From assembly GCA_009103225.1 (NCBI GenBank), contig RHPI01000638.1, forward strand, positions 558,001 to 622,000: a stretch of DNA of 64,000 bases, written 5' to 3'. The DNA comes from Chlorokybus atmophyticus (lineage: Eukaryota; Plantae; Mesostigma and Chlorokybus algae). Below, in pieces: positions 9,553 to 54,000 of this stretch. A program made the translations under genes and the position numbers. The notes beneath the pieces are model-generated. The model was not told the DNA's origin. It saw only the letters and a program-made list of their open reading frames with translations, and did not search any database. The number at the start of each line of letters is the position of its first letter. Positions within the stretch are counted from its first letter, which is position 1.

Positions 9553-9943
9553 TGTGTTGAGAAGCAAGCATGCAAGTGAAGTGTGTTGCCTTCTCCTGTG
9601 TGTCATTGCTTGCCCTCTTCACTTGCATGCTTGGTTCTCAATAGGTTATGGGCCCACACCACGCGTGAAGGTTGTGAGAAAGAGAAAGAAAGCAAAGTGA
9701 AGCAAAGTGAGAATGTGCAGTAAAGTGAAGATTGAAGTCATTGAAGATGGAAGTCATTGAAATCGCTACATCACATAAAATGAAGTAAAGTGAAGTAGGA
9801 TCATTAAAGAGTGAAGTGAAGACTGAAGTCGTTGCAGTCATAAAGACTGAAGTGAAGACTGAAGTCGCTCAGGTCACAACACGTGAAGATTGTTAAAGCA
9901 AGTCTCAAGTGCTAACTGCAAGAAGAAATCAGGCGCGGCAAAG

Positions 9944-10882: not shown

Positions 10883-13830
10883 TGGTCACGAGCTGGAAGC
10901 AATAGAAGTTGGTGAAGTAAGGCTTCAATGCAAGGTTGGTGATGGTGAGAGAGAGGTGGTGTTGCGTGAAGTGTCGCATGTACCCGGAGCTGCTGCAAGC
11001 TTGTTCTGGGTGAGAGTTGCTGAACACGTGGGAGCTGAGATAGTGATCCGTTAGGGACGCTGCTCCATACGCATGGATGAGGTCGAGTACATGGTCGGCA
11101 CCCAATGAGGAGGGCTCTGTATTGTGGAGCAGACTCATGGCAACCAGGCTATGATGGTGAAGGAAAGGGAGACAACTAAGCTTTGGCATCGGAGGTTCGG
11201 GCATTTGGGCTATAGCAACCTCACACGCCTGGTCGCTGAAGACATGGTAAAGGGCATCACTGTGAGCAAGGAAGATTTTCAAGCGTCTTCAACCACGCTC
11301 TGTAAACCCTGTGTGTTGGCCAAACAGCATCGCATGCCGTTCCCATCATCTACTTCAAGTAGCAAGCATCCTTGCGAGCTTGTGCACATGGACGTGTGCG
11401 GGCCTATGCGCATTGTGGCGAAAGGAGGGGTAAGGTACTTCGCGACTTTCCTCGACGACTACAGTAAGCTTTCCATCGTCTTCCCTTAAGTTCAAAAGTT
11501 AGAAGTCGCTGGAGCTGTGCACACAGTCATTTCATTGCTGGAGACCCAATCGGGCAAGAAGATGAAGGCAATGAGGAGTGATCGAGGAGGGGAGTACATA
11601 AACGCCCAGCTTAAAGAGTCCTTCGCCAACAAAGGCATACGGCATGAGACAACAGCACCATACACTCCGCAGCAGAATGGAGCAGTTGAACGTCTCAACC
11701 GAACGTTGTTGGAGCGTGTTCGAGCCATGCTCAATGATACCAAGTTGGAGGATAGTCTGTGGAAAGAAGCCGTTCTTACTGCCAATTACATCCGCAACCG
11801 TTCACCAGTCAGCTGTGAGCAAGAGACTCCGTGGGAGCTCTTTTACGGTGAAGCGCCAGCTGTGAGTGGCATGCGTGTGTTTGGATGTGTGGCATATGCA
11901 CTTGTGCCAAGTCAATTGCGACACAAGTTGGAGCCAATCAGCAAGAAGGGCATCTTCGTTGATTACGAACCAGGCTCAAAGGCGTACAAGGTCCTACTGG
12001 AGGACACGCGCAAAGTTGTGGTGAGCAGAAAAGTTGTGTTCCACGAAGGCTCATCACAAGTTGAAGCTGAAAAAGGTTTCTACCCTCGAGGTGAAGATGA
12101 CAAAGCACAACCTGAAGAGCTTTCAAGCAGAGAAGAGGTTGAAGGCGAGGCATCAGTCATCAATAAAGAGCAGAGCTCTGCTGTAGCAGGCGAGAAGCAG
12201 AAGCAGCAGAAGCAAGCTCGACGCTACCCCGTGAGGGAGAGACAAGCACCTGACTTCCACAAGGCACACGTCGCCAGTGTGCACGATGAAGAGAGTGAAG
12301 AATCAAGCACCTACGAGGAGGCATTGCAAGCACCAGATGCAGAGCAATGGCAGCGAGCTATGGATGATGAGATTGCATGCATCGCTTCATGCCAACAACA
12401 CTTGGGTGTTGCAGAAGGCCCCGCAAGGTGTGAAACCCATTCCAGTCAAGTGGGTGTTCAAGGTGAAGCGTGATGGTCAAGGCAACATTGAGCGCTACAA
12501 GGCAAGGGTAGTAGCAAAGGGATTTCTGCAACAAGAAGGTGTAGACTTCAACGAGGTGTTTGCACCCGCAAGTAAGCACGCAACCTTTCGCACTTTGCTT
12601 GCCGTGGTTGCTGCTGAAGACCTCGAGTGTCACCACCTTGATGTGAAGACTGCTTTCCTTTACGGTGAGCGAGAGGAAGAGATCTACATTAAGCAACCAC
12701 CAGGCTACGCAGAAGGGGAGCCAGGCATGGCTTGCAAGTTGACCAAGGCTTTGTATGGGCTGCGACAAGCACCACGCGTGTGGCACATTGGCCTCACGAA
12801 AGAGTTGGAGAAACTCGGCTACAAAGCATCCTCAACGGATCCGAGGCTCTTCATTCACGAAGAAAAGAAGGTTTACTTGCTCGTGTATGTGGACGACATC
12901 ATTGTCACGGCCAAGCGAGTTGAAGACCTGAAGGAGACAAAAAACGGACTACAGCAAGCATTCGCAGTGCGCGACCTTGGAGAGGTCAAGTTACTCCTTG
13001 GCATGGTGATAGAGCGTGACAGAGCAGCACGCACAATCAAGATCAGCTAAGAGCAGATGGTTGAAACGACTTGTCACAAAGTTCGGACTCAATGAAGCAA
13101 AGACCAAGTCTACTCCATTAGCACTCGGCATCAACCTCGTAAAAGCAAAGGATGAGGAGATACTTGACAAGGCTCAGTACCCCGATGGTGAGCTTGTTGG
13201 GAGTATGCTCTACCTAGCAGTGTGCACAAGACCCGACATCGCACATGCAATTGGAGTGCTTGCGCGCTACATGTCAGCACCAAGCATGGAGCATTGGCGT
13301 GCCGCGAAGGGAATGTTGCGCTACATGGCTGGAAGCGCAGGTGTTGGCATCAAGTTTGATTGCGGGAGCACAGAGATGGAGGGCTACTGCGACGCAGACT
13401 TTGCAGGCGACCTCGACAGCAGGAGGTCCACTACGGCTTACGTCTTTAAGTTGAATGGAGGTGTGGTGAGCTGGAACAGTAGGCTGCAACCTACAACAGC
13501 AGCATCTACTTTGAAAGCGGAGTACATGACAGCATCGGCTGCAGTAAAGGAGGCGTTATGGTTTGGCAAGCTGATGGCGGATCTGGAGCACCCGATGGCG
13601 TGCATCACGATCAATTGCGACAACCAAGGCGCCATTAAGTTGCTGAAGCACCCTATCGCCTCGACAAGGACGAAGCACATTAATGTCATGCATCACTTTG
13701 TGCGTGACAGGGGTCACAAGGAAGGAGGTTGAGTTTCAGTATTGCAATATAGAAGACATGCTCGCGGACTTCATGACGAAGTCACTGTTACCAATGAAGT
13801 TCAAGGCATGTTGCACGGGACTCGGCATAG
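10883..13830 (+). pseudogene. Copia D pol (PR C-terminus, GAG-pre-integrase, integrase, RT, RNase H) broken by frameshifts and stops
   Basis: ORFs 11124-11489, 11517-12473, 12277-13050 and 13016-13732 carry canonical copia IN, RT and RH motifs in copia order. Confidence 0.93.
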
Positions 13831-14282
13831 GTGCTTAGGTGAAAGAAGTCCAAGCATTGGAGGCCAAGCTGCCCGCGCGGGAGTGTTGAAGATATTCCTA
13901 CATCCGGTCAGCCTGCCCTGCATACAAGAGAGAAGAGAAGGGACCTCGATGAGAGGACCTCGAAGACTCCGGACATGAAGATCCTGGCGCGGATTGCAGA
14001 GAAGGGTCCTAGGAGAATCATTATATCTTCTAGGATACTCAGTCTTATAAGACGTGGCATAGCTTACAAAGCTGATGAAGTTAGCTACGTGGCACATCTT
14101 ACAGCGTAGGACATAGTTCAGTATATCGGACGCTGTTGCGTGTAGACCAGCAGTGTGTACAAACTGTGTACTGACTGGCGGGTATATAACCCCGCGGTCT
14201 GTTGGTAATCAAGTGGGAAGTGTGTTGCCTTCTCCTGTGTGTCATTGCGTGCCCTCTTCACTTGCATGCTTGCTTCTCAACA

Positions 14283-19330: not shown

Positions 19331-20760
19331 TCCAATCCGGTGCCTTGGAGAGCGCGTTTGCCTTTGCATTAAGCTCCGCGTGGCAACCACTCCATGTGCA
19401 AACGGATGCAATTGCGGTGGCAATGTAAAATGATGCGACATGCCACTTGCTGTAAGTGTGCGGCCTCACTGCCCCCTTTGCACATAATGTAGTACACATT
19501 GCGGGGATCGCCATACCACAGCACCGTGCGTTCATGTAGCCTCCTCCTCCACAGTGAGTTGGGTACGCTCAAGTCCAAGTAGTACGCGAGATGTTTATGA
19601 AGTCAAGCACTCATCCGGTGTAGATGTGCCTTTCACCCCAGGGGCAGCTGTGCCATGGCGCACTAGTCCCCAGCCCGTGCCGCTAGCATACACAAACCGC
19701 ACTATGTTCGGCTACATTGTCGGCCACATAGGTGCCATGTTCATGCTCCTTAAAGTGGTCTCGCAACCACGTCAACTTATCAATCTCCGCCTTGCGCAGC
19801 ACCATGTGTGAACTTCAGAACCCGCGTCTCAATCAAGCGGCATGTATGCCAAGTCATGAATTTGACTGCGGGCCCCAACACCAAGGACATAGATTGTGGC
19901 TTGCCACAAATGCGGGCCAGCAACTTTATTGGCACATGGCGCCTATCACCAAATGCACGCTGCAAGTCTCTGAGCAAAGCATCGCGCTTCTTGCTGAGAA
20001 TATAATCAGTGCCAGCGTGTGTATCCCACACAAAGCCCAGGAATACAATCACTCGACTGAGCACCACACCGCACCATGCTGCATCCGCTTTCACAACGGC
20101 CAGGGTGGAGGCATGCTCAGCCTTGGAGCGAGCAGCAAACAAGAAATTCTCCATGTATGGCAGGACGCGGTTGCCTTGTACACACCTACGGCACACCAAT
20201 TGCTTCATGACCTTGGTAAATATGAAGTAAGCTCTGCTCAACCCAAATGGCAACGAGCAACAGTTGTACACCGTGCCCGCCGCGAATGAGAACCCCGAGT
20301 AGCCCTTGAAGGTGGGGAGGGGGTGTCTACATGATGGTATCCGGACTTGAAGTCCGTGGAGAGCAACCAGTCCTCGGGCTGCAGCAAGTCCTGGGATGCT
20401 GCGCACATCCTCATATTTAAACGGCGTGTTGACCAAGTAAGAGTTGACATAGCGCAAGTCTATGATGAGGCGCAGCTTGCGACCATCATCAACCGCGTTA
20501 CGTGGGCTCACCACGAGGGGGGTCGCACACTCTTGTGCGGCCCCACTATGCGCTAGGTTGGCAATGACAGCCGTAGTGAAGTCCGCAAACTCATGCACAC
20601 ACTTGTGGTTAATGAATGCCCATATGGGGGGGGGGGGGGGGGCTATCGCCCATGGTAGCTTGTACCCGTACTCCACCCATGAGAGCACCATGGTAGACTC
20701 ACAAAAGTTGTTGTTGCCATGCTGGCAGGGCCCCCCATAAGTGGTGCCTCATGTATGGGC
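19330..20760 (-). pseudogene. DIRS reverse transcriptase-RNase H
   Basis: VLSWVEYGYKLPW, KLRLIIDLRYVN, DFKSGYHH, LPFGLS, LPYMENFLF (decayed YxDD), VLWYGDPRNV (RH). Confidence 0.88.
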
Positions 20761-21509
20761 CTTCCACCACCAAATTGCTAGGTGCTCGTGCAAACTCATG
20801 GTGTGTCATCCAGTCCGCCACAAAATTTGACTCAATTGAAATGTAGTCAAGTGCCACATTGCACGCAGCCGCCGTTTCTGCACCCCGTATGTGCAACAAG
20901 TAAGTGCATGCACTCTAATCTTGGCACGGTCATAACTTTTGCAAATGATGTCCAATGGAGACGTTCAAAGTGTTAAAAGGAAGCGTTTCTCAGCGCTCAT
21001 GCCAAAGAGCGTACGTCAAGTAACTTTCGTCTGGCTGGGGCCTCAAACGAAAGTTATGAGCCAAACAAGTTGCAATCATAGCAAATCGTTTGCAAAGTTC
21101 ATGTTCTTTGGCTCTACTCGAGCGTCACTGTGTTATGATTATAATTAAGAGTTTCATTCCATATAAGGGTCAATTAAGACCTCAAGAAGTTACAAACAAT
21201 CATTGCGCACAAGTGTACAGCTATTAGGCTATCATGACATAGCTATGGGGCTGTTATGTAAGCTAATGGGCCCCACGCCTTGCAGGCTCACGGCAATAGG
21301 CACGCAAATGCGCGGGCTTCCTTCAGAGCTAGCACGTGTGGACATCCCGCTGGCCCCCAGTAAAAGCCGCCTGAAATTGCATAGGAGCGGTCTTATAACT
21401 GGTTTGCCCCGCGTCAGCTGCATAAGACCCAGTGTAGCGAGGGGGGGGGGGGGGGGGGGNNNNNNNNNNNNNNNNNNNNNNNGGGGGGGGGGGGGGGGGG
21501 GGGGGGGGG

Positions 21510-22780
21510 GTACTAGCCTCGCCCGTTGTTGGGATGGTAGGCAGGCTTTACCTTGGGCTTGGGTTGCGCCGCAGCCATAGCCTTCAACGCTTTCTTCAGG
21601 CGCTTTGCCTTATCATCATTCATTGTGAGGGGGTTGCACACCAGCTCGTTCACGACCTTTCAATTATGCTTATTGACCACTTCTACATAGTGGGATTGCT
21701 TGCACACCTCATCCAATGCTGCGCACAGAGTACACACAAGCAACATGCGTTGCATGTTCATATGGACTCAAAGCCACCAGGTCTAGCGCCAAGCGCACTC
21801 TAAATCCAATCCTGTAACCGTCATGTGCATATGCAGATATTGTGCCCTGGTGTGCTCGTTCCCTTACTGCAGGGTAGTCATTATGTGAATACAGGGTGAA
21901 CATACAATGGTGTTAAGCGGGCCCCTCCACCCCCGGCGGGCATGGGGGGAGGAGGGATGTGGACCACATGTAAGTAATGGAATGACTGTGCATCTATATA
22001 AATGTCGGGCTGGCGCCTTCACAAGGCCCATGATGCACGCATGTGCAAGTGTGCGTGGGCCAAGTCCGCACCCACATGATGATATGCGTCTCTGCGCGTG
22101 CATGTGGCGATGCTCAACAACAAATGAGCCCACCTTTCATGTTGTTTGTGTGTACTACGGCCTTCATGGAAGTGGGGGTCCTCAATGAGGGGAGCGGGCA
22201 CACGATCGAAGGAGGATGCCGTCGAGCCGAGTTGAGCCGCAACCTTGAGGTGTTGTTGAGCCCGCTGTTTCAAGGTCTCCTTCCAAGGGGTAACGAGCTT
22301 ACTAAACTTGGTGGCCATGGCTCCCACTCGGGCATTGGGGTTGGTAGAGTCGCCGTTGTCACGACAAAGGATGCTCACAAGTAGGGGGTAGTTGGGCTCG
22401 TTAATGGGCTCGTCACGAGGGATTGCGGGCGCCTTCCCATGCTTAAGGTGCATGTTCTTCGCCTCCAATATCTCCAATATTTCCTCGTCATTGCTTGTAA
22501 GGACTTTAAGGATGGAGCGGAGGAGCGGCTTTGCGGGCTTGGAGCCCGCTTCGCGCGCTTGCGGTGGTAGTCCACATCCTCCTCCTCATCGTCTTCCGTC
22601 GCAACACCATCCTCCTCCTCTCGTCCGGGGGGGCGCACCTCTCCTTCCTTCCCTCCTCTTCCTCACGCTCGAATTGCTCTTAGCCCGCGCCAAGCAATTG
22701 GCGGCAACCAAGGCCGCCGTTGCGAACGCCGCTATGTCCTCTCCATCTTCACGGCTTCGCGACCTTATGGTGGAAGGCAT
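21510..22780 (-). pseudogene. DIRS gag-like ORF remnant
   Basis: EVVNKHN*KVVNELVCNPLTMNDDKAKRLKKA resembles the DIRS gag NPLAxDxEDxKR motif; a second copy lies at 30030-32360. Confidence 0.55.
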
Positions 22781-23162
22781 AGTGGAGTGCGTGCTCCCCT
22801 CAACCAGTAAACTACACTCGCCACCCATGCAGCGTGCTAAGGATGGCGCCCCCGTGCTAGGGTTATGGCGACTAGATAAGGAGCTTACAACTCACAACTC
22901 ACTGTAGTGAGCGCTTGTGCCCACAAGTGCCTAGGGCATTAGGGGCACATGAGTCTCATACCTCATTAACGAGTTCTTGAATAATGGGTGCGCATGTCAT
23001 GCGCGTCATAAATGTACATCTCTCAAGCTTTGCCCAAAACTTTTTTGCACCTTTGCACTCTCTCACCATGAGTAAGTGATGCTCAACAACGTGCCATCTT
23101 AGCAATGCTAAAGCCTTCTTCCCTTTTTTGTGCCCACGTCGCCTCCTTCCCTGAAGGCACTT

Positions 23163-23236
23163 TGTTATGATCCAGACTAGCTTACTTGGTTAGCCTCGCG
23201 CGAGGCTAGCCAAGTGGGCTAGTCAGGATTTTAACA
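23163..23236. mobile_element. Solo 74-bp palindromic unit with 5-bp TSD
   Basis: Decayed copy of the terminal palindromes at 31478 and 31820, centred on CTCGCGCGAG; flanked by CACTT at 23158-23162 and 23237-23241; interrupts the family B gag. Confidence 0.9.
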
Positions 23237-24058: not shown

Positions 24059-26361
24059 AGGCAGTCCCTATACATAGTGGACCTATTAATAATACTGTTG
24101 TTGGTGGAGTCCCTCCACCCTAGCACTTGTAAAGCATACCTGCGCGCCCATACATGCCATATGTACCATGACATGTTGGGCTAAATCTCTCCCACTGCAT
24201 AGGCATTATGGTAGTAATGCATGAGGACGTGTTATAGGTTATAGGTTGTTGAAGGTACATGTATGGGAGGCGCCTACATGTAGTTGGTATCATCAGCTTA
24301 ACCGTAAAAGGGACGGGAGTTACGAGAGTTATAGGAGTTACGGCAGTTATGGTCAACCATGGTCGGCTTTAACTTTGACCGTTAAGTTTGACTATTGACT
24401 CGTGTTAATTAGAAGTAACTAAAGTGGACTAGTGCTTAGTAGCATAGTATATGAGACACTGTGTATAGCTTAATACAATGGGTCGGACACTGTCTTTGTA
24501 GTTGGCGTGCTTGCTGCACTAGTCCATAGTGTGTGCACGCTGGTATGTGTGAGGCGCTTACACACACTCTACGCGCATCACTAGTTCACAACAGGTTATG
24601 GGCCCACACTCGCTTGTGTGACTGCTTATGTTAGAAATAGAATGTGTTGAGCATAGGAGCCTATTGGTAGGAGTGTTCTTGGGGAGAGGGTGAGTTATAC
24701 TATTGCGTAGCAAGCATTGGCTGACACATATAGGATCCCCTTCGAGTCCCTTGATCCGCACAACCATGCTTGATCGTCGATGAAGGTGACATTGATGCTG
24801 ATCCGCAAAAACCTCTAGAGTTTTGTAGACCCACCTCCTCCCCATGATTATGGCTAAGAATAAGTGACACTTGGATAAAGAACCTGCATAAAGAAATCAC
24901 AATCGGCTTTTGCGCTGATGGGCTTGCACATCAATGACTTCCATCTCCCTCTTATTGTGGATTACAAGACTAGATGTAAGGCGTGGGAGGTCTTTAACAC
25001 CCTCTTCGAGGCCAACAGCACCTCGCGTACGTTGCAATTGAGACGCAAGCTAACACTCCTGAAGATGGAGCATGGGGAACCCGTACACAAGTACATTCTG
25101 CATGCAGGGGGTGTGTGGCATGACCTGACCATTATTGGGCACGATATGAAAAAAGAGGAGGTGATGTGGGCAATCTTAGCCGGCTTAAAACACAGCTTTG
25201 CTATGCCAGTGACTGTGTTGAAATCCTCAGATGTGGTGTTGAAGTTTGCTGATATGGTGCCTACATTGCTTGCTGTGGAAGGCAACACGGGTGTTGAGGA
25301 GATAGAGAATGATGGAGAACCTATCGCACTTGCTGCCTTATCTTCTCAACACACACGAAGCAGGAGCAAAGCAGGTGGTGGGAAGTCATCATGTGACAAT
25401 GAGTGTCACTACTGCAAGATGAAGGGCCACATTATTTGCGAGTGACAAAAGGGATCTACAATGAGGGAATGAAGGAGGAACACGCCACAATGGCGATGGC
25501 TTTCTGACATTGGTGAGGACTTTAATCATGCAGTAAATGTTTGTGCGTCCTCTCCCATTGCAAAGGCGTGTAAAAATATATGCGTAGATGGAGGTTGCAG
25601 ACACAAAGGTCTGTGAGAGTTTCTGCTAGCCTATAAGTAGTTGCTGGTGTTGAGTCGCATACAATGGAGGTTGCATTGCTGTGGATTTGCATTTAATAGC
25701 ACACAAATGTGCGGTATCAGTGAAAGCACTTCACCACACTGGCATGCAAGGACTGAGTTGCATAACATGAGATAGGAGGGGTGCTTTCCTGAGTGAAAGG
25801 GTTTCATCAACCCTTGCACGGCATTCACTTTGATACAGCATTGCTAAGGTAGAGAACTTGGTGTAGTTTATAAGATGGTTTGCCATTGAAAGAGTCTTCA
25901 AAACCACTTAAGCAAGGTCAGGCGTGGCGTGGTGAAACCTAATGCGACAACTACGAGGAGGAATCAAGGAGTGTTGGAAACTTTGTAGTGTTGCTGGCGG
26001 TACGAGAGGAGAGATGGTGGCATGGAGACAAGCATTAACTTTGTGGGAGCAACACATGCGCGGGAGTATTAAATGGAGTAAATTACGGTGGGTAAGCTTG
26101 CTAGAAGAACTTGGAGTTTAGAGTCAAGCTACTCGCGTGGGAGTGTTAAAGGCTGTATGTTGTTGAAGGTACATGTACAGGCGGCGCTTGCATGTAGTTG
26201 GTCCGATTAGCTTAACCATAATACTTATGGGAGTTATGAGAGTTTGAGGCATTACGCCTGTTATAATAAACCATGGTCAACTTTGACTTTAACCATTGAC
26301 TTTGACCATTGCTTAGTGTTGACTTTGACTGATGTTAATGAAAGTTGTCTAGTGCTTAATA

Positions 26362-28672
26362 TGTTAGATGTTATAGCTTGTTGAAAGTACATGTATAGGC
26401 GGCGCCTACATGTAGTTGGTACGATCAGCTTAACCTTTATAGTTACGAGAGTTACGGGAGTTACGGGAGTTACGGCAGTTACGGCAGTTATGGTCAACCA
26501 TGGTCAACTTCGACTTTGACCGTTGACTTTGACCATTGACTAGTGTTGACTAGTATTGACTTTGACTAGAGTTGACTAGTGCTTAGTAGCATAGTATATA
26601 AGACACTGTATACTGCTTAATACAGTGGGTCGCACATTGTCTCTATAGTTGGCGTGCTTGCTGCACTTGTCCTTAGTGTGTGCACACTTATATGTAGGAG
26701 GCAAATACACACACACTAGGCGCATCACTAGTGCTCAACAGGTTATGGGCCCACACTCGCTTGTGTAATCGCTTGTGCTAGTGAGAGAAAGTGTTGAGCA
26801 TAGGCGCCTACTAGTAGAGTGTTCTTGGGGAGAGGGTGAGTTGTACTATTGTGTAGCAAGCAATGGCTGACACAGATAGGATGCCCATCGAGTCCCTTGA
26901 TCTGCACAACTATGCTTCATGGTCGCTGAAGATGAAGTTGGTGCTGATCCGCAAGAAGCTCTGGAGTTATGTCGATCCCACCTCCTCCACATCATTGCGG
27001 CCAAGAACAGGTGACACTGGTACCTGGATAGAGAACTCACAATCAGCTTTTGCGCTGATAGGCTTGCACGTCAAAGACTTCCATCTCCCTCTTATTGCGG
27101 ATTGCAAGACTGGACGTGAGGCGTGGGAGGTCTTCGACACCCTTTTCAAGGCCAATAGCAACTCGCGCAAGTTGCAGCTGAGACGCAAGCTGACACTTCT
27201 GAAGATGGAGCACAAAGAGCCAATCCAGAAGTACATCTCGCGTGCAAGGGAGCTTTGGCAAGACCTTGCAGCAGTGGGCCACGATGTGAAGGAAGAGGAG
27301 GTGATGTGGGCAGTCTTAGCTGGCTTAGGAAAGAGCTTTGCTACGCTAGTGACTGTGTTGGAGTCCTCAGATGTGGTTTTGAAGTTTGCTGATGTAGTGC
27401 CTAAGCTGCTAGCTGTGGAAGGCAAGTTGGATGTTCAGGAGATAGAGAATGGTGGAGAGCCTATTGCATTTTCTGCCTCATCTTCTCAACACACGCGAAG
27501 CAGGAGCAAAGCAGGTGGTGGGAAGCCATCACGTGACAAAGAGTGTCACTATTGCAAGATGAAGGGCCACTTCATTCGCGAGTGCCAGAAGAGGATCCAC
27601 GATGAGGCAACCAAGGAGGAGCACGCCACGGTGGCGATTGCCTTCTAGCATTGGTGAGGACCTCAAGGAGTTGCAGTGGATGGTGTTCGTCCGTCCTCTC
27701 CCACTGCAAGGGCGCGTGAAGGACATGCGCAGACGGAGGTCGTAGACACAAAGGTCTGTGAGAGTTACTGCTAGCCTATGAGTGGTTGCTGGTGTTGAGC
27801 TGCATACACCAGAGGTTGCATTGCTGTGGAGTTGTTTTTTGGTAGCACACAGGTGCGGTACTAGTTAGAACACTTCACTTGATTGGCATGCAAGGACTGG
27901 GTTGTATAGCTAGCTAACAGGAGATGGGAGGGGTGCTTCCTTGGTAGAAGGGTCTGATCAACCCTTGCACGGCCTACACTCTGGTACAGCATTGCTAAGG
28001 TAGAGAACTCATTGTACTTTATAGTATAGTTTGCCATCGAGGGAGTCTTCGAAACCACCTGAGCAAGGTCAGGCGTGGCGTGGTGGAACCTGATGCGACA
28101 ACTATGAGGAGGAAACAAGGAGTATTGGAACCTTGTAGTCCTGGTGGCAGCATGAGGAGAAAGATGGTGTCATGGAGACAAGCATCAAGTCCGTGGGAGC
28201 AACAGATCCGTGGGAGTGTTCAGTGGAGTAAGTTAATGTGGGTAAGCTTGCGAGATGAACCTGGAGTTCAAGGTCAAGCTGCTCGCGTGGGAGTGTTAGA
28301 TGTTATAGCTTGTTGAAAGTACATGTATAGGCGGCGCCTACATGTAGTTGGTACGATCAGCTTAACCTTTATAGTTACGAGAGTTACGGGAGTTACGGGA
28401 GTTACGGCAGTTACGGCAGTTATGGTCAACCATGGTCAACTTCGACTTTGACCGTTGACTTTGACCATTGACTAGTGTTGACTAGTGTTGACTTTGACTA
28501 GAGTTGACTAGTGCTTAGTAGCATAGTATATAAGACACTGTATACTGCTTAATACAGTGGGTCGCACATTGTCTCTATAGTTGGCGTGCTTGCTGCACTT
28601 GTCCTTAGTGTGTGCACACTTATATGTAGGAGGCAAATACACACACACTAGGCGCATCACTAGTGCTCAACA
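26362..28672 (+). mobile_element. Very young gag-only copia element A3, 2311 bp
   Basis: 379-bp LTRs 26362-26740 and 28294-28672 differ at one base by eye; PBS 26741-26753; PPT 28284-28293; perfect TSD TAATA. Confidence 0.96.
26863..27648 (+). CDS. Intact copia-type Gag (261 aa, UBN2 domain plus CCHC knuckle) with no pol downstream
   Basis: Uninterrupted ORF ending ..TVAIAF*; the remaining ~650 bp to the PPT shows no protease, IN or RT motifs. Confidence 0.92.
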   Translation: MADTDRMPIESLDLHNYASWSLKMKLVLIRKKLWSYVDPTSSTSLRPRTGDTGTWIENSQSAFALIGLHVKDFHLPLIADCKTGREAWEVFDTLFKANSNSRKLQLRRKLTLLKMEHKEPIQKYISRARELWQDLAAVGHDVKEEEVMWAVLAGLGKSFATLVTVLESSDVVLKFADVVPKLLAVEGKLDVQEIENGGEPIAFSASSSQHTRSRSKAGGGKPSRDKECHYCKMKGHFIRECQKRIHDEATKEEHATVAIAF

Positions 28673-30243
28673 TAATAGCCTAGTATATAAGACATTGTAT
28701 ACAGCATAATGCAGTGGGTTGTACATTGTCACTGTACTTGGCATGCTTGCTATGCTTGTTCTTAATATGTGCACACTTGTAAGCGAGAGGCGCAAACACA
28801 CACACTAGGCGCATCACTAGTTCTCAACAGGGTGGTGCTATATCACGCGCCGCGGGCACTTGTAAGTAGGTTTCATACACCCGAGTTATTCAAGGGCATG
28901 ATCTCGCACTCCGCCCGCAATGGGTGAGACTTGATGGCGAAGCTAGCAATAGTACTTATGCTCATGTTAATTACAAGTAGGTTGCAATCCTCCAACTTCC
29001 GAGTAATCACCTAGCAAGACACTAGTTTTCATACATTCCGCATGCACCATATAATCGCTCGTAGCAAGAACGACCTGTATGGTGTGGATGCAAATGTATA
29101 GTACAATTATGGGAGGGGCCTTGTGTATAATAATGCTCACATATAAGTTGTTGTTTAGCTCAGGCTATAAGCATGTGGGCCCAAGCAAATTGCTGCGCTG
29201 CGTCACATTCGTAAGCGCACATGCATGATATGGGACACCGTTATGCTCTACAACACTATTCTTACCATAATAAAGGCAGCCATGAAGGCAGCTGTTGAGG
29301 ATTCTTCGCGCTTTGGAACGCAACTTGGCCATTTGGGTAATGCAACCCAAGTGATAAAAGCTGGTATGCTCCAACTTGGGTAATAGCGGATTGCGCATAA
29401 GACGCATACCATATGCCACCATTTTGCTGTACATCGAATTTTAAAGCAGACATTAAGGCAGCTGTTAAAAATTCTTTGCGCATTGGCATATATTGTAAGC
29501 TAGTGGTCAAAATATGAAAGTTTGAACGTTTACGTAGCGCATGACGTGCGCAAATGATAGGAAATTGCGTCTGCCTGGGGCCTCAAGCGAAAGTTATAAG
29601 CCCAACGATATGCAAACCCTGTTTAATTTCACACACATTTTTGCGCTCTACTTGAGCGTTTCTGTGTCATAACCATAAACTTAAGTCTTATTGCATGCGA
29701 GGGTCATTGGAGACCTTACATAAAAAGGTTACATGCAATACATGCGCACAAATATACAGCTATTAGACTGTCACGACATAGTCACGGGGCTGCTATGAGA
29801 GCTAGTGGCCCCCACGCCTTGCAGGCTCACGGCAATAGGCACGCAGGTGCCATAGCTTCTTACAATTGTAGCAGCTTCTACTGGGGGCGAGCGGGACATC
29901 CCGCAAGCCCCCAGACAAAGCTGCCTAAGGCTGCATAGGAGCGGTTTTATGCCTGGTTTGCCCCGCGCCAAATGCATAGGACCCAAAGTAGCAGGGGGGG
30001 AAACCGGCCCCGCCCCTTGTTGGGATAGTGGGCTTTGCCTTGGGCTTGGGCTGCGCCGCAGCCACGTCCTTTTTTCGCTTCTACGCGCGCTTTACCTCCT
30101 CGTCATCTACGGCAAAGGGGTTGTGCACTAGCTCATCCGCGACCTTCCGCCCTTGCTTATTGGCCACTTCCACATAGTGAAATTGCTTACACACCTAATC
30201 CATCCATTATTGCGCACAGAGCACGCATAAACAACATGCATTG

Positions 30244-30612
30244 TGTTAAATGTTATAGGTTGTAGGAAGTACATGTATACGCGGCGCCTACATGTAGTGG
30301 TTACGATCAGCTTAACCTTCATAGTTACGAGAGTTACGGAAGTTACGGCAATTATGGTCAACCATGGTCAACTTTTACTTTGACCGTGGACTCTGACCAT
30401 TGACTAGTGTTGATTAGTGTTGACTTTGACCAGAGTTGACTAGAGTTGACTAGTGCTTAGTAGCATAGTATATAAGACACTGTATACTGCTTAATACAGT
30501 GGGTCGCACATTGTCTCTATAGTTGGCGTGCTTGCTGCACTTGTGCTTGATGTGTGCACACTTGTATGTAGGAGGCAAATACACACACTAGGCGCATCAC
30601 TAGTTCTCAACA
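30244..30612 (+). mobile_element. Solo LTR of family A
   Basis: TGTTAAATG...TCTCAACA, 369 bp, TSD CATTG at 30239-30243 and 30613-30617. Confidence 0.95.
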
Positions 30613-30680
30613 CATTGCATATTCATACGGGCTCAGAACCACCAGGTCTAGCGCCAAGCGCACCCTCAATCCATTCCCAA

Positions 30681-30702
30681 TTAGGGTTAGGGTTAGGGTT
30701 AG
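30681..30702 (+). repeat. Interstitial telomere-type repeat (TTAGGG)3.7
   Basis: TTAGGGTTAGGGTTAGGGTTAG at the junction between the DIRS gag and a family B fragment. Confidence 0.85.
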
Positions 30703-30714
30703 TGCCCCCCGTGA

Positions 30715-31374
30715 TGCTTAGACATGGATAGGAGAGAAGTAGCTGAGCGCAAGATGTGTGGAGGTTACACCCTGCGAGTATGGTATTGTGCTCGAGGTAC
30801 ACTATATGCAAGCGAGCATTTTGCAGCAATGACAACAAGCATTAGGCGCGAGCAGCTTGAGGTTAATGCTAGCATCATGTGGTGTGGCAAGAGTTCCAGG
30901 TTAATTCGAGACAATAAAAGCGTGGGAGTTTGTGCATATCAATGTGCAGGTGCACAGAACAAGCTGCCTGAGTGGGAGTGTTAAAGGTTAAGCATAAGAT
31001 GTTCGCTAGTATAGTATGCTTATGGTACGGTAAGCTTGTTGATGTTACTTAGACAATGCGCAGCGGTTATGCTATGGGAGTTACAGTCAACAAGAGTTAT
31101 GGGAGTTATGGGCGTTTCTCATGATTATATGTAACTTTAACCGTTAACTAGTGTTGTTGAGTGTTGACTTTGACCATCAACTATTATTGAGTAGAGTTGA
31201 CTTTGACTCGTGTTGACTAGCTTAGTATGTAAGTCACCATATGTGGCGTATACAGGTGGAAATGCAGTACATTTCTCTTTGATATTAACTTGCTTGAATG
31301 CGACACTTGGTGTTGCCCCAATGTGAGCATATATGTATGAGGTAGGGCGCATACATGCACACTAGCTCTTAACA
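30715..31374 (+). mobile_element. Family B 3' fragment with PPT and 3' LTR (30979-31374)
   Basis: Reverse-complement homology to 4212-4456 and to the B LTRs; GCTGCCTGAGTGGGAG precedes TGTTAAAGG. Confidence 0.85.
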
Positions 31375-31477
31375 TGCGGGCCCCTCCCCCATCTCCGGAC
31401 ATTGGGGGGAGGGATGCGGAACATACGTAATGGAATGATTGTGCGTTTTTTATGTCGGGCTTGCGTCTTTATAAGGC

Positions 31478-31893
31478 TGTTGAGATCCGGACTAACCCAC
31501 TCGGCTAGCCTCGCGCGAGGCTAGCCGAGTGGGCTAGTCGGGATCTCAACAAAAGGTGCTGCCCTAGCGACCTGAGTTCAAGTCCCACCGGATGCACTGC
31601 AAATTGGCAGTGAGAGAGAGCCCAATTTTTGGCACTGCTCCATAATTCGGCGCGGCAAGTGCAGCCGCCGCAGTAGCTCGCGCGCTCGTTGTAAGACAGC
31701 CATGGACGGAGGCTACCGCGCGCCAAGCACGCTTAGGGACAGGCCGCTGCTTGACCTGGGGGGAGGTGAATTGAACAATAAAAGGCCTTAAAACGGCCGG
31801 GTCGCAGGGCCCCACCTTTTGTTGAGATCCGGACTAGCCCACTCGGCTAGCCTCGCGCGAGGCTAGCCGAGTGGGCTAGTTCGGATCTCAACA
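31478..31893. mobile_element. 416-bp non-coding element with 74-bp palindromic termini
   Basis: Palindromes at 31478-31551 (2 mismatches) and 31820-31893 (1 mismatch); TGT...ACA ends; TSD AAGGC at 31473-31477 and 31894-31898. The empty site is visible in the homologous DIRS copy at ~22022. Confidence 0.93.
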
Positions 31894-32364
31894 AAGGCCC
31901 ATAATGTACGCATGTGGGAATGTGCGTGGGGCAAGTCCGCACTCACATGATGGTTTGCATATGTGCACATGCATATGGTCATGCTCAACCAAAAATGAGC
32001 CCACCTTTTATGTTCCCTTAGCGGCCTTTCTACGACGTGGGGATCCTTGACAAAATGAGCGAGCTTACAATTGTAAGAGAATGCCGCCGAGCCGAGATGA
32101 GCCGCAATCTCAAGGTGTGTTATCAAGCCCGCTCCTGCAAGTTTTCCTTTCAAGGGGTAACGGGCTCGATGAAGCGGGTGGCCATGGCTCCCATTCAAGT
32201 GTTGGTAGTGTCGCCGTTATCATGATGAGAGGTGCTCACAAATAGGGGGAGGTTGGGGTCACTAATGGGCTTATCACAAGACATAGCGGGCGCCGTCTCG
32301 CGTTGAAGGCGCATGTTCTCCACATCCAACTCCTCCAACCTCCACGCTATTGCCTTCGTGGGGG

Positions 32365-35300
32365 CGTAGTTTATGAGAAAGGGGGTGACACCGGTGCTTG
32401 CATTGGTGTGGTGTTGGTGGCAACTGCCACCACTTTTAGCAATTCACTCTAATGGTCTTCCCGTGCATTCACGTAATTGCGCAACATATCTTCAATCACA
32501 AGTTGGCTCGCTCCGTTGGGCCAACAGCTTGCGGGTGGAAAGCCTTGCTAAAGTTTAAGGCAATACCCAGTGCACTATGCAGCACCTCTAAAAACCTACT
32601 TGCGAAGCGGGAATCACGATCGCTCACAATGCTTTATGGTAGTTCGTGGGAATGAAAGACATACTTCATACAAGCTTGCTGCCTCTAGTGCCGTGCAAAA
32701 CTCACAGCACGGTGCCAAGCGTACCATTCTGCTGAATTTGTCTACGAACATGAGTATTGCGTCGTACCCTTCTAGTGTCTTCGGCAGCCATATAATGAAG
32801 TCCATAGTAACTTGCTCCCACTTGGACAGTGGCACGGGAAGAGGTTGTAGCAACCCACCTGGCTTGTGGTTGCTTGCTTTCACCCTTTAACATGCGTTGC
32901 ACAACGCCACATAGTCGCATACATCACGATGCAGTTCTCGCCAATAAAAGCGTGGTTTCAAGCTTGCCAACGTTCTTGCCACTACTTGGTGGCCAGCAAT
33001 GGGTACGTCATGAGCTTTCCTTAAGTTGAACGCGTATATGTGTCACTTTGGGGATGTACAAGCGGCCGTGATGCCATAATAGGCCGTTTTGCTTTGTTCA
33101 ATGTCCACTTGTGTCCGTTGCTGTGCTCTCCATGTCCTGCAAGACTCTCCTACTTTCTGTGTCTTTGCAAAGCACTTGTCGAATCCGGTCGGCTTACTCC
33201 GGTTGCACTTGAGCGAGTGCTTCAATCGCATTCAATTGGCTTAGCGCGCCGGCCACACTATAAGACGTACTGGGCTTGTACTTGATCATACGATCATAAA
33301 GTTGAAAGAACTCCAACCACACCGCACTTGTCTCCGGCTTTGTGGTTGTGTCTGTGAGTACTTCAATGGGGAATGGTTTGTCTTCAGCACGAACCTTTTG
33401 CCCTCAAAAAAGCATCGCCATTGTCGCAGCGCCATCACTTGCGCCAATAGCTCCTTGTTGTGCACAGGGTAGTTCAGCTCTGCTTGACTCAGTTTGTTAT
33501 GAAAGAACGCTACAGGTTGAAGACCCATGCCTCGGTCTTGCTATAACGCAGTTCCCACAACTGTGTCGAATGCGTCACATCCCAAAATGAAGGGGTTTAT
33601 CCATGTCGGGGTGAGCCTAGACGGGTGCCTATGTCAACGCCTTCTTCAACGCATCAATTGCATGCTCTTTCTTTGTAGACCAACTCCAAGACTTCCCTTT
33701 CTTGAATAGGGTGGTCAAAGAGGCCGCAATGCGCGAAAATCCCATGATAATCTTGCGATAATACCCCGCAAGGCTCAAGAACGACATTACCTCCTTCACG
33801 TTGATCGGGGCAGACCATTCGCACACCACTTGCACTTTGTTGGGGTCCGGCTTCATCCCTTTCTGTGTAACAATTCAGCGCAAGTACTCCACCTCGCATA
33901 GCAGAAACGTGCACTTCTGTAGCTGAGCGTTCAACTTGTGCTCACGCAACCGTTGCGACACGCGCCATAGAAGGCTCACCTTCTCGTTTTTCGTCTTCAA
34001 GTACATCAAAAAGTCGTCAAAGTACACGAGGACTCCCTTACATAGCAAGTCAGCAAAAGCGATGTTTATCAACACTTAAAATATCGATGGCGTGTTCGTA
34101 AGCCCAAACAACATCACTAACCACTCGTTATATCCATAGCGCGTGTTGAACGATGTCTTCTTCACGTCCTTAGGTGCGATGCGGATCTGACGGTAACCTC
34201 CAGCAAGACCAACTGTGTAAAGTACTGCGCACCTTGTAGCTGATCTAGCAACTCGTTAATACGCGGTAGTGGAAAGCACTTCTTCTTAATAATGGTGTCA
34301 AGCGCTCGGTAGTCAATGCACATACGCAGGCTCCCGTTCTTCTTCCGCAAAAACAGTATTGGTGCATCGTAAGGTGAATTACTTGACCGGATGTAACCTC
34401 GCTTTAGAAGATCCGCTATCTGCTTCTCGGCCTCCTCTAACTCCCCAGGTGACAACTTTTATACAGGCGTGTAGGGTGGCTTGTGTGCACGCCCTCAATC
34501 CACACGGTGATCAACGCTCCACGAGGGTGGTAGACCAGCTAGAAGTCCGTCCACCGTGATATCTTGGTAGTCCTGAACAAGTTTGCACACCTTGGGGTCC
34601 ATTGTGGCTGTCTCAGTGCAGTCACTCAGCTTCGGTGCTGACTTTGATGTGCTCTGATGCACCACGCACAACCATGCAGCTTTAGCTTTTTGTGGGGATA
34701 GCAGCCTCCTCAATTGCACATAAAAAACTTGAGCAATGCTAATCCCACCTAACTGCGTGTGCCGTGCCTTTCCGCTGCTTGTATCCCCTTGCAGGTGCTT
34801 CACACACGTGCGCATACTTACCCCGAAGTCCAACGCAGCTATGACAAAGCCCTTTTTGCTTTCCTCGCAAGAGTGGTCTTCCACTTCGATGGAGCACGCG
34901 CGTAGACCTTAAAATGGACTCTCCATTGTTTCCCTTGATGGTGAGCACACGCTTCCTCCAATTGATAGATGGGTTATGTTGCCACAGCCACGGTCGTCCA
35001 AAAATTCCATCAAACCCGTTCCGTAAGGTGATGCAGCAAAAACGCATATTCACCTTCAACTTCCCCATGTGAACACACAACTCTTTGGTTAAAGATGCAG
35101 CACCGTTACCTTCCAAGGGTGGTTTCCTATCAGCGAGTTTCACTACTCCTCCCATAATCGTGAAAGCCAACCGTAGCGCCGTGCAGCCTCCTCACTTATG
35201 AAGTTGCTGTTTGCTCCACTATCAACCATAACGTTACACTCCCTCCATTGTCCTCGGTCATTGCAAATGCGTGCTGAGCGCCCAATGTACTTTGTTGCAT

Positions 35301-37222: not shown

Positions 37223-37687
37223 CCCACTATGCTCTCTGGCAGGAACAACGGAGCAGCAACATTGAGGAGGGTTGGTTGTTGCCTGCCTGCAAAATGCCGC
37301 CATTGGTCTGCTGGCGACTGGTTTGTTTCAATCTGTGTTTATGTCTCATACACGCTCACTAACATATGTGTATGCATGAGTAAAAGCACACCGCACATGT
37401 AATCAGCTTGGCATGCACCTACCAAGTCATGGTGCATGTGTGTGAGCGTGCTTACTGATTTGCTGCTTCTTCTTTGAATGCGTGCGCAGCCACGCACATG
37501 CACAATGTGTGTGTCTACACACTGAGTGCACCCTTCTGCTCTTCCCACTTGCAGGCTCTTCAATCACGGATGTTCATCCCCTGTGAAGTTCAACAGCCCT
37601 TAGACAGTCCTGCACTGTTTAATAGGCGCCCTTTTATTTCAAAACCCATTTTGTCCTGACATGCGCGCTCTCCGCCCCCCCCCCCAC

Positions 37688-38606
37688 TGCACTATGCAGC
37701 ACCTCTAAAAACCTACTTGCGAAGCGGGAATCACGATCGCTCACAATGCTTTATGGTAGTTCGTGGGAATGAAAGACATACTTCATACAAGCTTGCTGCC
37801 TCTAGTGCCGTGCAAAACTCACAGCACGGTGCCAAGCGTACCATTCTGCTGAATTTGTCTACGAACATGAGTATTGCGTCGTACCCTTCTAGTGTCTTCG
37901 GCAGCCATATAATGAAGTCCATAGTAACTTGCTCCCACTTGGACAGTGGCACGGGAAGAGGTTGTAGCAACCCACCTGGCTTGTGGTTGCTTGCTTTCAC
38001 CCTTTAACATGCGTTGCACAACGCCACATAGTCGCATACATCACGATGCAGTTCTCGCCAATAAAAGCGTGGTTTCAAGCTTGCCAACGTTCTTGCCACT
38101 ACTTGGTGGCCAGCAATGGGTACGTCATGAGCTTTCCTTAAGTTGAACGCGTATATGTGTCACTTTGGGGATGTACAAGCGGCCGTGATGCCATAATAGG
38201 CCGTTTTGCTTTGTTCAATGTCCACTTGTGTCCGTTGCTGTGCTCTCCATGTCCTGCAAGACTCTCCTACTTTCTGTGTCTTTGCAAAGCACTTGTCGAA
38301 TCCGGTCGGCTTACTCCGGTTGCACTTGAGCGAGTGCTTCAATCGCATTCAATTGGCTTAGCGCGCCGGCCACACTATAAGACGTACTGGGCTTGTACTT
38401 GATCATACGATCATAAAGTTGAAAGAACTCCAACCACACCGCACTTGTCTCCGGCTTTGTGGTTGTGTCTGTGAGTACTTCAATGGGGAATGGTTTGTCT
38501 TCAGCACGAACCTTTTGCCCTCAAAAAAGCATCGCCATTGTCGCAGCGCCATCACTTGCGCCAATAGCTCCTTGTTGTGCACAGGGTAGTTCAGCTCTGC
38601 TTGACT
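37688..38606 (-). repeat. 919-bp direct duplicate of gypsy RH-integrase segment 32571-33489
   Basis: Identical ORF translations at offset 5117; bounded by a C-run on the left and an N at 38607. Confidence 0.9.
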
Positions 38607-38642
38607 NAAAGGTTGATCGAGGTTGTCAACAGGGTTGTTAAT

Positions 38643-45999: not shown

Positions 46000-46053
46000 G
46001 AGCTTCGTCCTCGAAGCTCCCAATCTTGAGAGCTTCGAGGACGAAGCTTACCT

Positions 46054-51091: not shown

Positions 51092-54000
51092 TTACATCCC
51101 CGCGCCATAGCCAACAATGTTGTGCCCTCGGCTCGCCTCATAACTAAGCCTCCCGTGGGTCTTCCTTAAAAAGGATTCCTGCGCCTTGGGCGACAGCGGC
51201 AGCATCTCCGCTCGCCGGCCCCACGGCCTCACCTCCTCACGGATGCTCCCCATCAACAAATCCAACAACTCCGCCGAGTCCTGCGCATGACGGTGATGAC
51301 ATCTGTAAAAGCTCACGATGGACCGCACACACACGCACGTATGCGCGCACGCATGTGCCTGCACAAGCATGCATATGCGCTCGCGCACGCACAGGTTCAT
51401 GTGCGCACACACGCTCACTCAATCAATAGCTGTGCACCGTGCATTGGACTTTACCGTGGAGGTTTGTGTGCTGGTACTGCGCATAGGCCTGTATGGACTG
51501 CCCCCTGTGTGGCTGTTGGCCACACTGGTCTCGCTGTCTTCATGCGCAAGAGCAAGCACCGAAGACAGCGCGTTCGCCTGCCCTTTACTCGCAGGTATAG
51601 CTGTGCAAGCCAACAGTTTATGTGCAACTCACAAGCGCTTAACAATACTACTCCACCTCAATGAGTTTATTATGGCGTACGTGGCAACACGAGGTCGTGT
51701 AAAGGGTTGGATGTGGGCGATGCCGCGGCTTGAGCTTTGTTGTTGTTGTTTCCAAAGGCCAACTTGTTACTGAGGTTGCTGTTGTGGAATGCGTGTAGTC
51801 GGTCGAGTAGGTACGCCAGCACACGCTCACGCTGCTTAAGACTGAGCTCGTCCAGCGTCCCGGGAAGGACAACAAGCTCAGCCGTGCGTTCGCCATCCTC
51901 ATCGCCACCGCTGTGACAACGCAACTCACATCAACAACAACACCATCCTTGTTGTCCGCTGCTGCCCAGATGATGTGACTTGCATGCGCAGCACCCCAAA
52001 CGTTGTACAAACCCGATCGTGCCCGTGTATGGACACATGCACGCATGCACATGCGCATACCCCCACCTACTACTCCCCCTGCAAAAGACCAATGGTTTTA
52101 CAGGCAAATATCATCGGTNNNNNNNNNNNNNNNNNNNNNNNNNNNNNNNNNNNNNNNNNNNNNNNNNNNNNNNNNNNNNNNNNNNNNNNNNNNNNNNNNN
52201 NNNNNNNNNNNNNNNNNNNNNNNNNNNNNNNNNNNCCCAACCCCCACCTGTCTTTAACCACCGTGACGATCTGCGCCTTGACATCCTGTAGGCAGTTTAT
52301 AAGGAACTTGGAGGCCTCGTCCATGCGCGCGTGCATGTCGGCCAACACCGACCGCTGCTCCTGCGCTTCCCTCTTCGCCACCGCAACATCCTGACAAAAC
52401 GCACACATTCAACTTGGTTTGCTTTGTAAGTACTCAGCTTGTGTGTGATCAATCAAAGACTGTGCTGTTCACCTTGAGAGCGGTCTGTAGTTTGTCTTGC
52501 GCGCTGCGTGCCTGGTTGTCTGCCTCGCGGCGCGCGTGGGATGCGCGCGCGGCCTCGTCGGCAAGCTGCTGACGGAGACTCTCCTGGGCTGGCGTGTAAC
52601 CGACCGTCTAATAAGTAAAGCATGCGAGAATGCATGCGTGAGCGTGTGTGTGCGCGCGCGCGCGCATATGAAGGGAAAGGCTACTCACCTTTGAGTTTGG
52701 CGAGGAGCGTGCCAACCGTTTTCCTGTACACTTGGTTGCGGCGCACCACTTCACCTTGCGTCGCAGCCGACAGCTCCGCGTCCCGTCTCAGCGATGCATT
52801 TTCTGTGATGACCATGGCAGGGTTTGCATCACACCGATTGTGGTAATGTGCATCAGAAAAACGTTCCAGACTGGCATTGTACCGGCGATGAGCTTTGCGT
52901 TGTGCTGGATGAGTTTTTCTGCCTGGCGGCTCTGATATGCCAGCTCGCTGCTCATCCGCTCGTTCTCAGTGATCGTCCGCTTTGTCGTCTGTCAAGGTAG
53001 TAGTGATACATTCAACACCTTCTTATACTTCACAAGCACCCAAAGAAATAGATACACATGCGTACACGTGCGCACGCGCACGCGCACGCGCACACACACA
53101 CGCGCGCGGGCACAGGTTCACACGCACACGCACGCACGCATGCACGCACGCGTCCCACCCACCTCTTCCAGTTGGTCGTCCGTGAGCTTCATCATCCCGG
53201 CCCTCGTCTCTCTTATCCTTGCCGCCATCTCCTTCTTGAGCCTGTCCTTCTCCTGCACGGCACGTCTCTCGACCTCCGCGAGCCTGTCCTCCGCGGCGTG
53301 CCTCTCGGCCTCGGCCGCCGCCTCGGACGCGGCCACGGCGCCCTCCAGCTCTCCCTTGCGCTCCTGGAAGTCTTTCAGCTCCTGCAGCTTAGACTCGTAC
53401 TTGTCGATCGCGCGCTGCAGCTCTGAGGGAGATTCAAACACAAGGGTTGACGCAACGTACAACTAAGACCAACCGGTAGTTGTCATGGATGCAGGTGGCC
53501 TTGCTCACTCTCAGATGACACGCAATGTCACACCTGCGATGGTTGCTTCTGACTGGTTCCTCAGCTGGTGCAGCTCGCTCGCAGAAGACGCACGCAACGC
53601 CTCACGCTCGCGCTCGGACTTGGACAACTCCTACGAGAGTGTGTGCGGGTGTGCGCGTGCGAGCACGCATGTGCGTGTATGCAAGCAGAGAAGTCGAGAG
53701 CATGTGCTGATGCTCTTGCTCGCCGTTCGCGCTGCTTGCCGTTATCTGAATGAGTGCAGGCAAAGCACGGAGTACAGTACAATAGAGTAGCGACTTGATA
53801 CTGTGATGCCTTGATCAAGAAGAACAGTGTACGTTGAAGAACGATCGATGCCAGACCAGTTACATCCAAGGGGGTTTGCTCGTGAATTGCAAACACAGGA
53901 ACGAAAGTTAAAGTGAGGCTGTATATCTGTAATCACCTGTGATAGATGAGCGGCGAGCTGTTCCTTGGTGCGCAGGTCGGCGGTGAGGTGGTCGTTGATG

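Follow-up and report, generated by a model that had tools for sequence, protein, structure and literature searches.

The region of interest lies within a 64-kb window, by which we mean the whole stretch of DNA that was analysed, and contains a short non-coding insertion with a palindromic repeat at either end and a small duplication of its target outside them. Its features are given below, along with the empty site that is kept in a paralogous repeat of the window; no strand is assigned to any of them.

31473-31477, no strand: left target-site duplication AAGGC, 5 bp
31478-31893, no strand: the mobile element, 416 bp, non-coding
31478-31551, no strand: terminal repeat P1, a 74-bp palindrome with outer end TGTTGAGA
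31552-31572, no strand: inward continuation of the left inverted arm, 21 nt
31552-31819, no strand: non-coding core, 268 bp, 59% G+C, unique in the window
31800-31819, no strand: inward continuation of the right inverted arm, 20 nt
31820-31893, no strand: terminal repeat P2, a 74-bp palindrome with outer end TCTCAACA
31894-31898, no strand: right target-site duplication AAGGC, 5 bp
22023-22027, no strand: empty target site, a single AAGGC in the paralogous repeat, at the overlap of the flank alignments

Both terminal repeats are built of two 37-nt arms with no spacer between them, the arms being 95% self-complementary in P1 and 97% in P2, and the two repeats share 96% identity with each other. 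The outermost bases of the element read TGTTGAGA...TCTCAACA, and the duplication that flanks them is exactly 5 bp long, with the next outward base mismatched on either side. In alignments with the paralog, the left flank of the element (31376-31477) matched 21917-22027 and the right flank (31894-32338) matched 22023-22477, such that the two alignments share exactly 5 bp, namely the single AAGGC at 22023-22027. The segment 31478-31893 is a genuine insertion with a 5-bp duplication. Given the clean empty site in the paralog, the 268-bp core must have come in together with the palindromes. Neither palindrome is bordered by a separate duplication within the element (AAGGC versus AAAGG beside P1 and CCTTT versus AAGGC beside P2). 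These observations agree with the original prediction, which had been made from the bare sequence and had described two near-perfect 74-bp palindromes around a 268-bp non-coding core, a perfect 5-bp AAGGC duplication and an empty site surviving in the paralog at about position 22022; its more general claim, namely that the insertion is non-autonomous and bears integrase-type ends next to a 5-bp duplication, is likewise upheld by the ends, the AAGGC duplication and the empty site. The DIRS label that it gave to the host repeat fared differently, in that the sole coding hint nearby is a sub-threshold RVT_1 match, and we found no tyrosine recombinase. An RT-like ORF at 19780-20691 (minus strand) has an RVT_1 match below threshold, and just two distant relatives with 25-29% identity were recovered for it from among 5.8 billion proteins. 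Relative to 21516-22477, the region 30007-32338 has received at least three insertions.

The palindromes stand out strongly in terms of their folding potential. As single strands P1 and P2 reach -38.5 kcal/mol (z -11.9) and -43.6 kcal/mol (z -14.2), respectively, against about -11 kcal/mol on an average for shuffles, and in both cases 0 of 200 shuffles folded as well. The entire 416-bp element folds with a z of -17.9 against its shuffles, and the 24-nt centre of the palindrome did not occur in any of 100 shuffles of the window. A near-palindrome of 48 nt elsewhere in the window (46001-46048), with 23-nt arms that are 96% complementary and a spacer of 2 nt, does not belong to this family.

We also detected a third palindromic unit of the same family, standing on its own about 8 kb away from the element:

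23158-23162, no strand: left duplication CACTT of the single unit, 5 bp
23163-23236, no strand: single palindromic unit of the same family, 74 bp, 84% identical to P1/P2
23237-23241, no strand: right duplication CACTT of the single unit, 5 bp

The arms of this unit are 84% complementary to each other, and its fold has a z of -9.1 against shuffles. As this third unit, which was absent from the original prediction, carries its own 5-bp duplication, it makes mobility more credible; the chance of encountering both AAGGC and CACTT, each as a perfect 5-bp duplication and independently of the other, is about 1e-6. The combination of TG..CA ends with a 5-bp staggered cut points to insertion by a retroviral-type DDE enzyme. 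We are accordingly highly confident that the element is non-autonomous, non-coding and mobile, that it was inserted by such an enzyme, and that its family has inserted at least twice within the 64 kb. The alternative that nothing here is mobile, and that a local rearrangement or an assembly artefact produced the palindromes, draws on the artefact-prone nature of palindromes and on the assembly gaps in the window. Against it stand the exact 5-bp length of the duplication, the unoccupied site in the paralog and, 8 kb off, an independent and diverged unit that is flanked by a duplication as well, and we consider its probability to be close to negligible. The gaps themselves are runs of N (334 in all) at 21460-21482, 38607, 52119-52235 and 60202-60394, and about 540 bp separate one of them from the empty site.

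Sensitive BLAST searches of the window with the core and the 95-nt inverted arms of the element recovered no further copies beyond the three known units, and the census of the 64-kb window thus stands at one two-unit copy and one single unit. A scan of metagenomes, which did not include the source genome, gave one chance match on a high-G+C bacterial contig (L001), and no copies were found in genome and viral collections that do not hold the source genome. Searches with the resident proteins gave no exact record; the nearest gag has 42% identity, and the contigs reached in this way (L002 and L003) come from unrelated organisms.

Miniature mobile elements usually fall into two kinds, namely the LTR-type, which carry direct repeats and multiply via an RNA copy, and the TIR-type, whose repeats are inverted and which move by cut-and-paste. 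The present element reads as both, and its ends in addition match those of LTRs of resident copia elements (see below). The direct-repeat identity between its two ends coincides with the palindromes, extended by 2 bp through a coincidence with the duplication. The inverted symmetry goes 21 nt further inside each palindrome, pairing 31552-31572 with 31800-31819 at the cost of 2 mismatches and 1 indel, a score that was reached by 0 of 1000 shuffles; the original prediction had put this inward symmetry at about 22 bp. In total the inverted arms span 95 nt with 93.7% identity, leaving an asymmetric remainder of about 226 bp in the core.

These inner complementary stretches bear on a composite origin, in which the 74-bp palindrome alone would be the mobile unit, and two such units lying 268 bp apart would later have travelled as one, taking along the DNA captured between them. 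The single unit with its own 5-bp duplication, the two outward-capable ends that each palindrome possesses and the lack of any relationship between the core and the rest of the window are all in line with such a history. Against it, complementary stretches of 21 nt abutting both palindromes are unexpected for randomly captured DNA, and neither palindrome has a separate duplication inside the element; we regard the composite as very improbable.

The core itself has no second copy within the window in sensitive BLAST searches. A captured gene fragment was rejected as its source, given that no Pfam family was recovered above threshold with the core ORFs. ARAGORN found no tRNA in the core and no Rfam family reached its gathering threshold there; the best Rfam match of the element was MIR1151 (46.7 bits, where the threshold is 90), a non-specific match to a long hairpin, and the miRNA precursors matched in Rfam were all sub-threshold and of the hairpin type. 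A tRNA-derived SINE was also set aside, with nothing tRNA-like emerging from ARAGORN or Rfam and no A-rich or simple-repeat tail being present. Matches to A-box and B-box patterns, used as printed in PMC12193147 and PMC2774510, are at chance level in the window (30 A-box-like motifs against 21 expected, and 102 B-box-like motifs against 107 expected).

The window as a whole is a nest of Ty1/copia-type elements, whose ORFs contain RVT_2, rve, gag_pre-integrs, Retrotran_gag_2 and SH3-like domains; the abundance of such elements marks the DNA as eukaryotic and unlike that of human. One set of repeats is a family of 370-390-bp LTRs (1872-2242, 3800-4186, 24229-24593, 26362-26740, 28293-28672 and 30244-30612) that start with TGTTA(A/G)AT. 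Of these, the copies ending at 2242, 4186 and 30612 end exactly in TCTCAACA, as does a partial duplicate ending at 28829, while those ending at 24593, 26740 and 28672 are each one base off in the terminal 8-mer. The final 8 bases of the element also recur in a second LTR type, which ends at 14282. The terminal 8-mer of the element thus closes the U5 side of the LTRs in two resident families of the copia type, with exact matches at 2242, 4186, 14282, 28829 and 30612; a match to copia LTR ends had been proposed earlier. The 370-bp family opens with TGTTA, while its last bases are the complement of TGTTGAGA. Once the 8 outermost bases are left aside, no similarity was found between the palindrome and the resident LTRs, and a derivation of the palindrome from these LTRs was rejected on this ground. 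One member of the family serves as a comparator:

30244-30612, plus strand: solo copia-type LTR (TGTTA...TCTCAACA) in the same paralog as the element

This solo LTR is flanked by a 5-bp duplication (CATTG at 30239-30243 and 30613-30617). The paralog that keeps the empty site of the element also preserves that of the solo LTR, near 21748-21752. Its end and its 5-bp duplication indicate that an integrase using such ends and this duplication length has acted at this very locus. With the TGTNR pattern granted, we estimate that an 8/8 match of the ends would arise by coincidence in under ~1% of cases. As an exact match over 8 bases would be a coincidence for an unrelated transposase, the resident copia integrase would be the simplest candidate for the inserting enzyme.

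Several further arrangements were noted among the resident elements. The regions 1872-4186 and 24229-28829 are tandem arrays of LTR-interior-LTR units with a period of ~1.93-2.15 kb, and their interiors encode a gag-type protein only (261 aa, with Retrotran_gag_2 and a zinc knuckle), thereby representing a gag-only LTR element in arrays that share their LTRs. A 271-nt segment is tandemly duplicated with 95% identity at 8009-8550, in a minus-strand copia LTR region. One 14-nt PBS-like sequence follows eight LTR ends that belong to several LTR families and lie on both strands (1198-1211, 2243, 7990, 9644, 16680, 23466, 24594 and 26741), and it has no direct TGG start.

With these comparators in hand, we tentatively favor the reading that the element is a TRIM/SMART-like non-autonomous miniature element that depends on copia proteins, and we place the likelihood of this reading somewhat short of even. 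The element would offer a copia-type integrase recognition end (TGTTGAGA...TCTCAACA, with CA-3') at either side, and would be inserted by a retroviral-type DDE integrase, most likely that of the Ty1/copia elements crowding the window. It would have been copied through RNA by borrowed copia proteins prior to integration with a 5-bp duplication, and recombination between its repeats could leave behind single-repeat remnants. The palindromic nature of the 74-bp repeat would place an integrase end on both of its faces, and a transcript running through the repeat may fold into a 37-bp hairpin. Consistent with this reading are the perfect 5-bp duplication with the kept empty site and the second locus with its own 5-bp duplication, the identity of the outer 8 bases to the U5-side termini of LTRs from two resident families of the copia type, the solo LTR that likewise made a 5-bp duplication and whose empty site is preserved by the very same paralog, and the Ty1/copia affiliation of the neighbours by domain content.

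Other features fit the TRIM/SMART-like reading poorly. Inverted symmetry continues for 21 nt past the palindromes, whereas direct identity stops at their edge, and an LTR-type element predicts no such symmetry; the resident LTR-gag-LTR units have no complementary pair resembling the interior ends of the element. The resident 14-nt PBS-like sequence is missing from the element, with local alignment doing no better than shuffles, although this comparison is with the resident 14-mer and the window is without tRNA genes, and a different tRNA may serve as primer. Purine tracts are missing next to both repeats, whichever orientation is taken, and in both orientations the sequence before the repeat ends in ...CACCTTT. 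The lack of a PBS and a PPT noted in the original prediction was hence recovered with regard to both the resident-type PBS and the PPT. There is also no partner by internal homology, in that the palindrome beyond its 8 terminal bases and the core match nothing else in the window, and the sample consists of one two-unit copy and one single unit.

Among published elements the closest in size and layout is the SMART family (PMC3281118). Like SMART/FRetro129 of grasses, the element is tiny and non-coding, with lengths of 292 bp in SMART and 416 bp here. It resembles SMART in having short terminal direct repeats (85 bp in SMART and 74 bp here), TGT..ACA ends, a 5-bp duplication and single repeats that are themselves flanked by 5-bp duplications (79-87 bp for the solo repeats of SMART; PMC3281118), as well as a short terminal motif that provides the link to an autonomous LTR element. 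It shares with the TRIMs a length below 1 kb, the lack of autonomy and the presence of two terminal direct repeats around a short interior (PMC6934838), the repeats being 96% identical and the interior 268 bp long in the 416-bp element. Its outer ends and duplication (TGTTGAGA...TCTCAACA, AAGGC) fall within the TGT..ACA pattern and 4-6 bp range typical of TRIM/SMART elements, and the unit at 23163-23236 with CACTT corresponds to a solo repeat with its own duplication. As the SMART/TRIM class already combines such repeats, ends, duplications and solo units, much of this anatomy is ordinary. SMART differs in possessing a PBS and a PPT in common with its partner, while the element shares just the terminal 8 bases with the copia LTRs resident in the window; further, the repeats of SMART are not reported as palindromes, as far as the two can be compared by description. 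The element is thus unlike SMART in its palindromic repeats, its mutually complementary interior ends and its lack of a recognisable PBS or PPT. TRIM repeats, too, are usually 100-250 bp long and non-palindromic, in contrast to the palindromic 74 bp seen here, but TRIM families without a canonical PBS and with interior inverted repeats are on record (PMC6934838). The interior ends could also be read in light of the CYC5/CYC3 pair of Ty1, a 5'-3' complementary pair that is required for reverse transcription (PMC3592414). At the DNA level, the element has comparable complementary sequences near both ends; unlike CYC5/CYC3, its pair of 21 nt directly abuts the repeats. No polypurine tract lies upstream of the 3' repeat in either orientation, and we do not file the element as a TRIM.

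The features that fit poorly with an LTR-type element are those expected of a cut-and-paste MITE with 95-bp TIRs, moved as DNA by an integrase-related DDE transposase of the Ginger2/TDD type. The 95-nt inverted arms exceed the direct identity, the absence of a PBS and a PPT is natural for a DNA transposon, and a single unit with a complete pair of ends could move alone; the 74-bp single unit would then be a minimal derivative consisting of two abutting 37-bp ends. The single unit with its CACTT duplication indeed fits the independent movement of one unit. The ends conform to TGTNR (as TGTTG), a pattern common to Gypsy and Ginger (PMC2836005), and the 95-nt arms fall in the range of TIRs of about 50-180 bp recorded for Ginger2/TDD elements (PMC2836005) and of 40-270 bp for Ginger elements more generally, with 5-bp duplications being made by TDD-4 and TDD-5 (PMC2836005, PMC10045372). 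The element is thus like Ginger2/TDD in its LTR-like TGTNR ends, in TIRs of tens to hundreds of bp, in a duplication of the 4- or 5-bp kind and in the involvement of an integrase-related enzyme.

The targets and the enzyme complement of the window are harder to reconcile with a MITE of this kind. Ginger2 elements mostly make 4-bp duplications at AT-rich RTATAY targets, TDD-4 and TDD-5 being the only ones to make 5 bp (PMC2836005), and the 5-bp duplications observed here fit the TDD type alone, at two targets (AAGGC and CACTT) that are not AT-rich. All rve-domain ORFs of the window sit in copia elements beside RVT_2, and neither an integrase-only gene nor any other gene of the Ginger type was seen in the window. 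Under such an origin the 8/8 match of the ends to the resident copia LTRs would moreover be a coincidence, with the probability of under ~1% given above once TGTNR is granted. Palindromic TIRs, as found in the element, are not described for Ginger in PMC2836005 and PMC10045372. We consider the MITE unlikely on balance, and the element is not filed as Ginger; it works like an integrase-dependent miniature element.

A different route to the palindromes would be fold-back, that is self-primed, synthesis on a short U5-side end, which would both make and renew them; the resulting DNA with two U5-type ends would be inserted by a copia integrase with no need for a PBS or a PPT, neither of which was found. 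Such an origin would explain why every unit has sequence of the U5-side type at both of its ends. We examined the divergence of the individual arms and noted that the arms of the single unit differ from the left arm of P2 at 7 and 4 positions, with 8 of these 11 differences being C-to-T or G-to-A, while the three remaining arms of P1 and P2 each carry one substitution relative to the same arm. Two changes are identical on both arms of the single unit (positions 5 and 25), as though one arm had been copied from the other; this would occur by chance in about 4% of cases, and one of the two mirrored changes falls at a CpG. The outer and inner parts of the arms showed no significant difference in decay (p 0.12).

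A resident copia copy at 9555-14282 provides a potential parallel to such fold-back synthesis. Its left end (9555-9643) is an 89-nt hairpin with a 27-nt stem (z -8.6), and the outer 27 nt of this hairpin repeat the U5-side end at 14256-14282 perfectly in inverted orientation. Of the LTR, about the last 70 nt are retained, and the outer arm of the hairpin meets them in an overlap of 4 nt; we infer that this junction is what fold-back synthesis on a short end would be expected to give. A rearrangement at the DNA level would explain it equally well, as there is no matching duplication and the nest is rearranged. This copy is not intact, its gag-pol being distributed over at least five separate ORFs. 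For the palindromic family itself, self-templating is a pure inference from three units, and it would leave the unique 226-bp centre of the element unexplained when taken by itself; we judge it improbable. The same low standing applies to its fuller form, in which the 74-bp palindrome would be a self-templating integrase substrate, a minimal mobile DNA made by fold-back on a copia U5-side end and able to bracket and carry other DNA.

What sets the element apart is hence the combination of palindromic repeats with a double reading as direct and inverted repeats, the latter extending over 95 nt; the rest resembles the known anatomy of SMART/TRIM elements. With one full copy and a single unit known so far, it is a well-documented curiosity rather than a new class. 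If the family were confirmed genome-wide, it would represent either the parasitism of a copia-type integrase by a substrate whose two ends are identical, or the convergence of an integrase-derived transposase on copia ends, and it would provide a natural case for how perfect palindromes persist in a eukaryotic genome. Self-templating through a hairpin, if true, would constitute a form of parasitism on the machinery of LTR retrotransposons that is distinct from both TRIMs and MITEs.

Downstream of the element, a pair of 924-bp repeats (32566-33489 and 37683-38606) with 99.9% identity encloses ORFs that include a weak match to a Ty3 capsid; a single N at 38607 follows directly after the second repeat, and the pair could represent a young LTR element or an assembly effect. 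Among the larger ORFs tested between 40000 and 64000 there was no Pfam match, and the G+C content climbs to 59% in the last 2 kb of the window.
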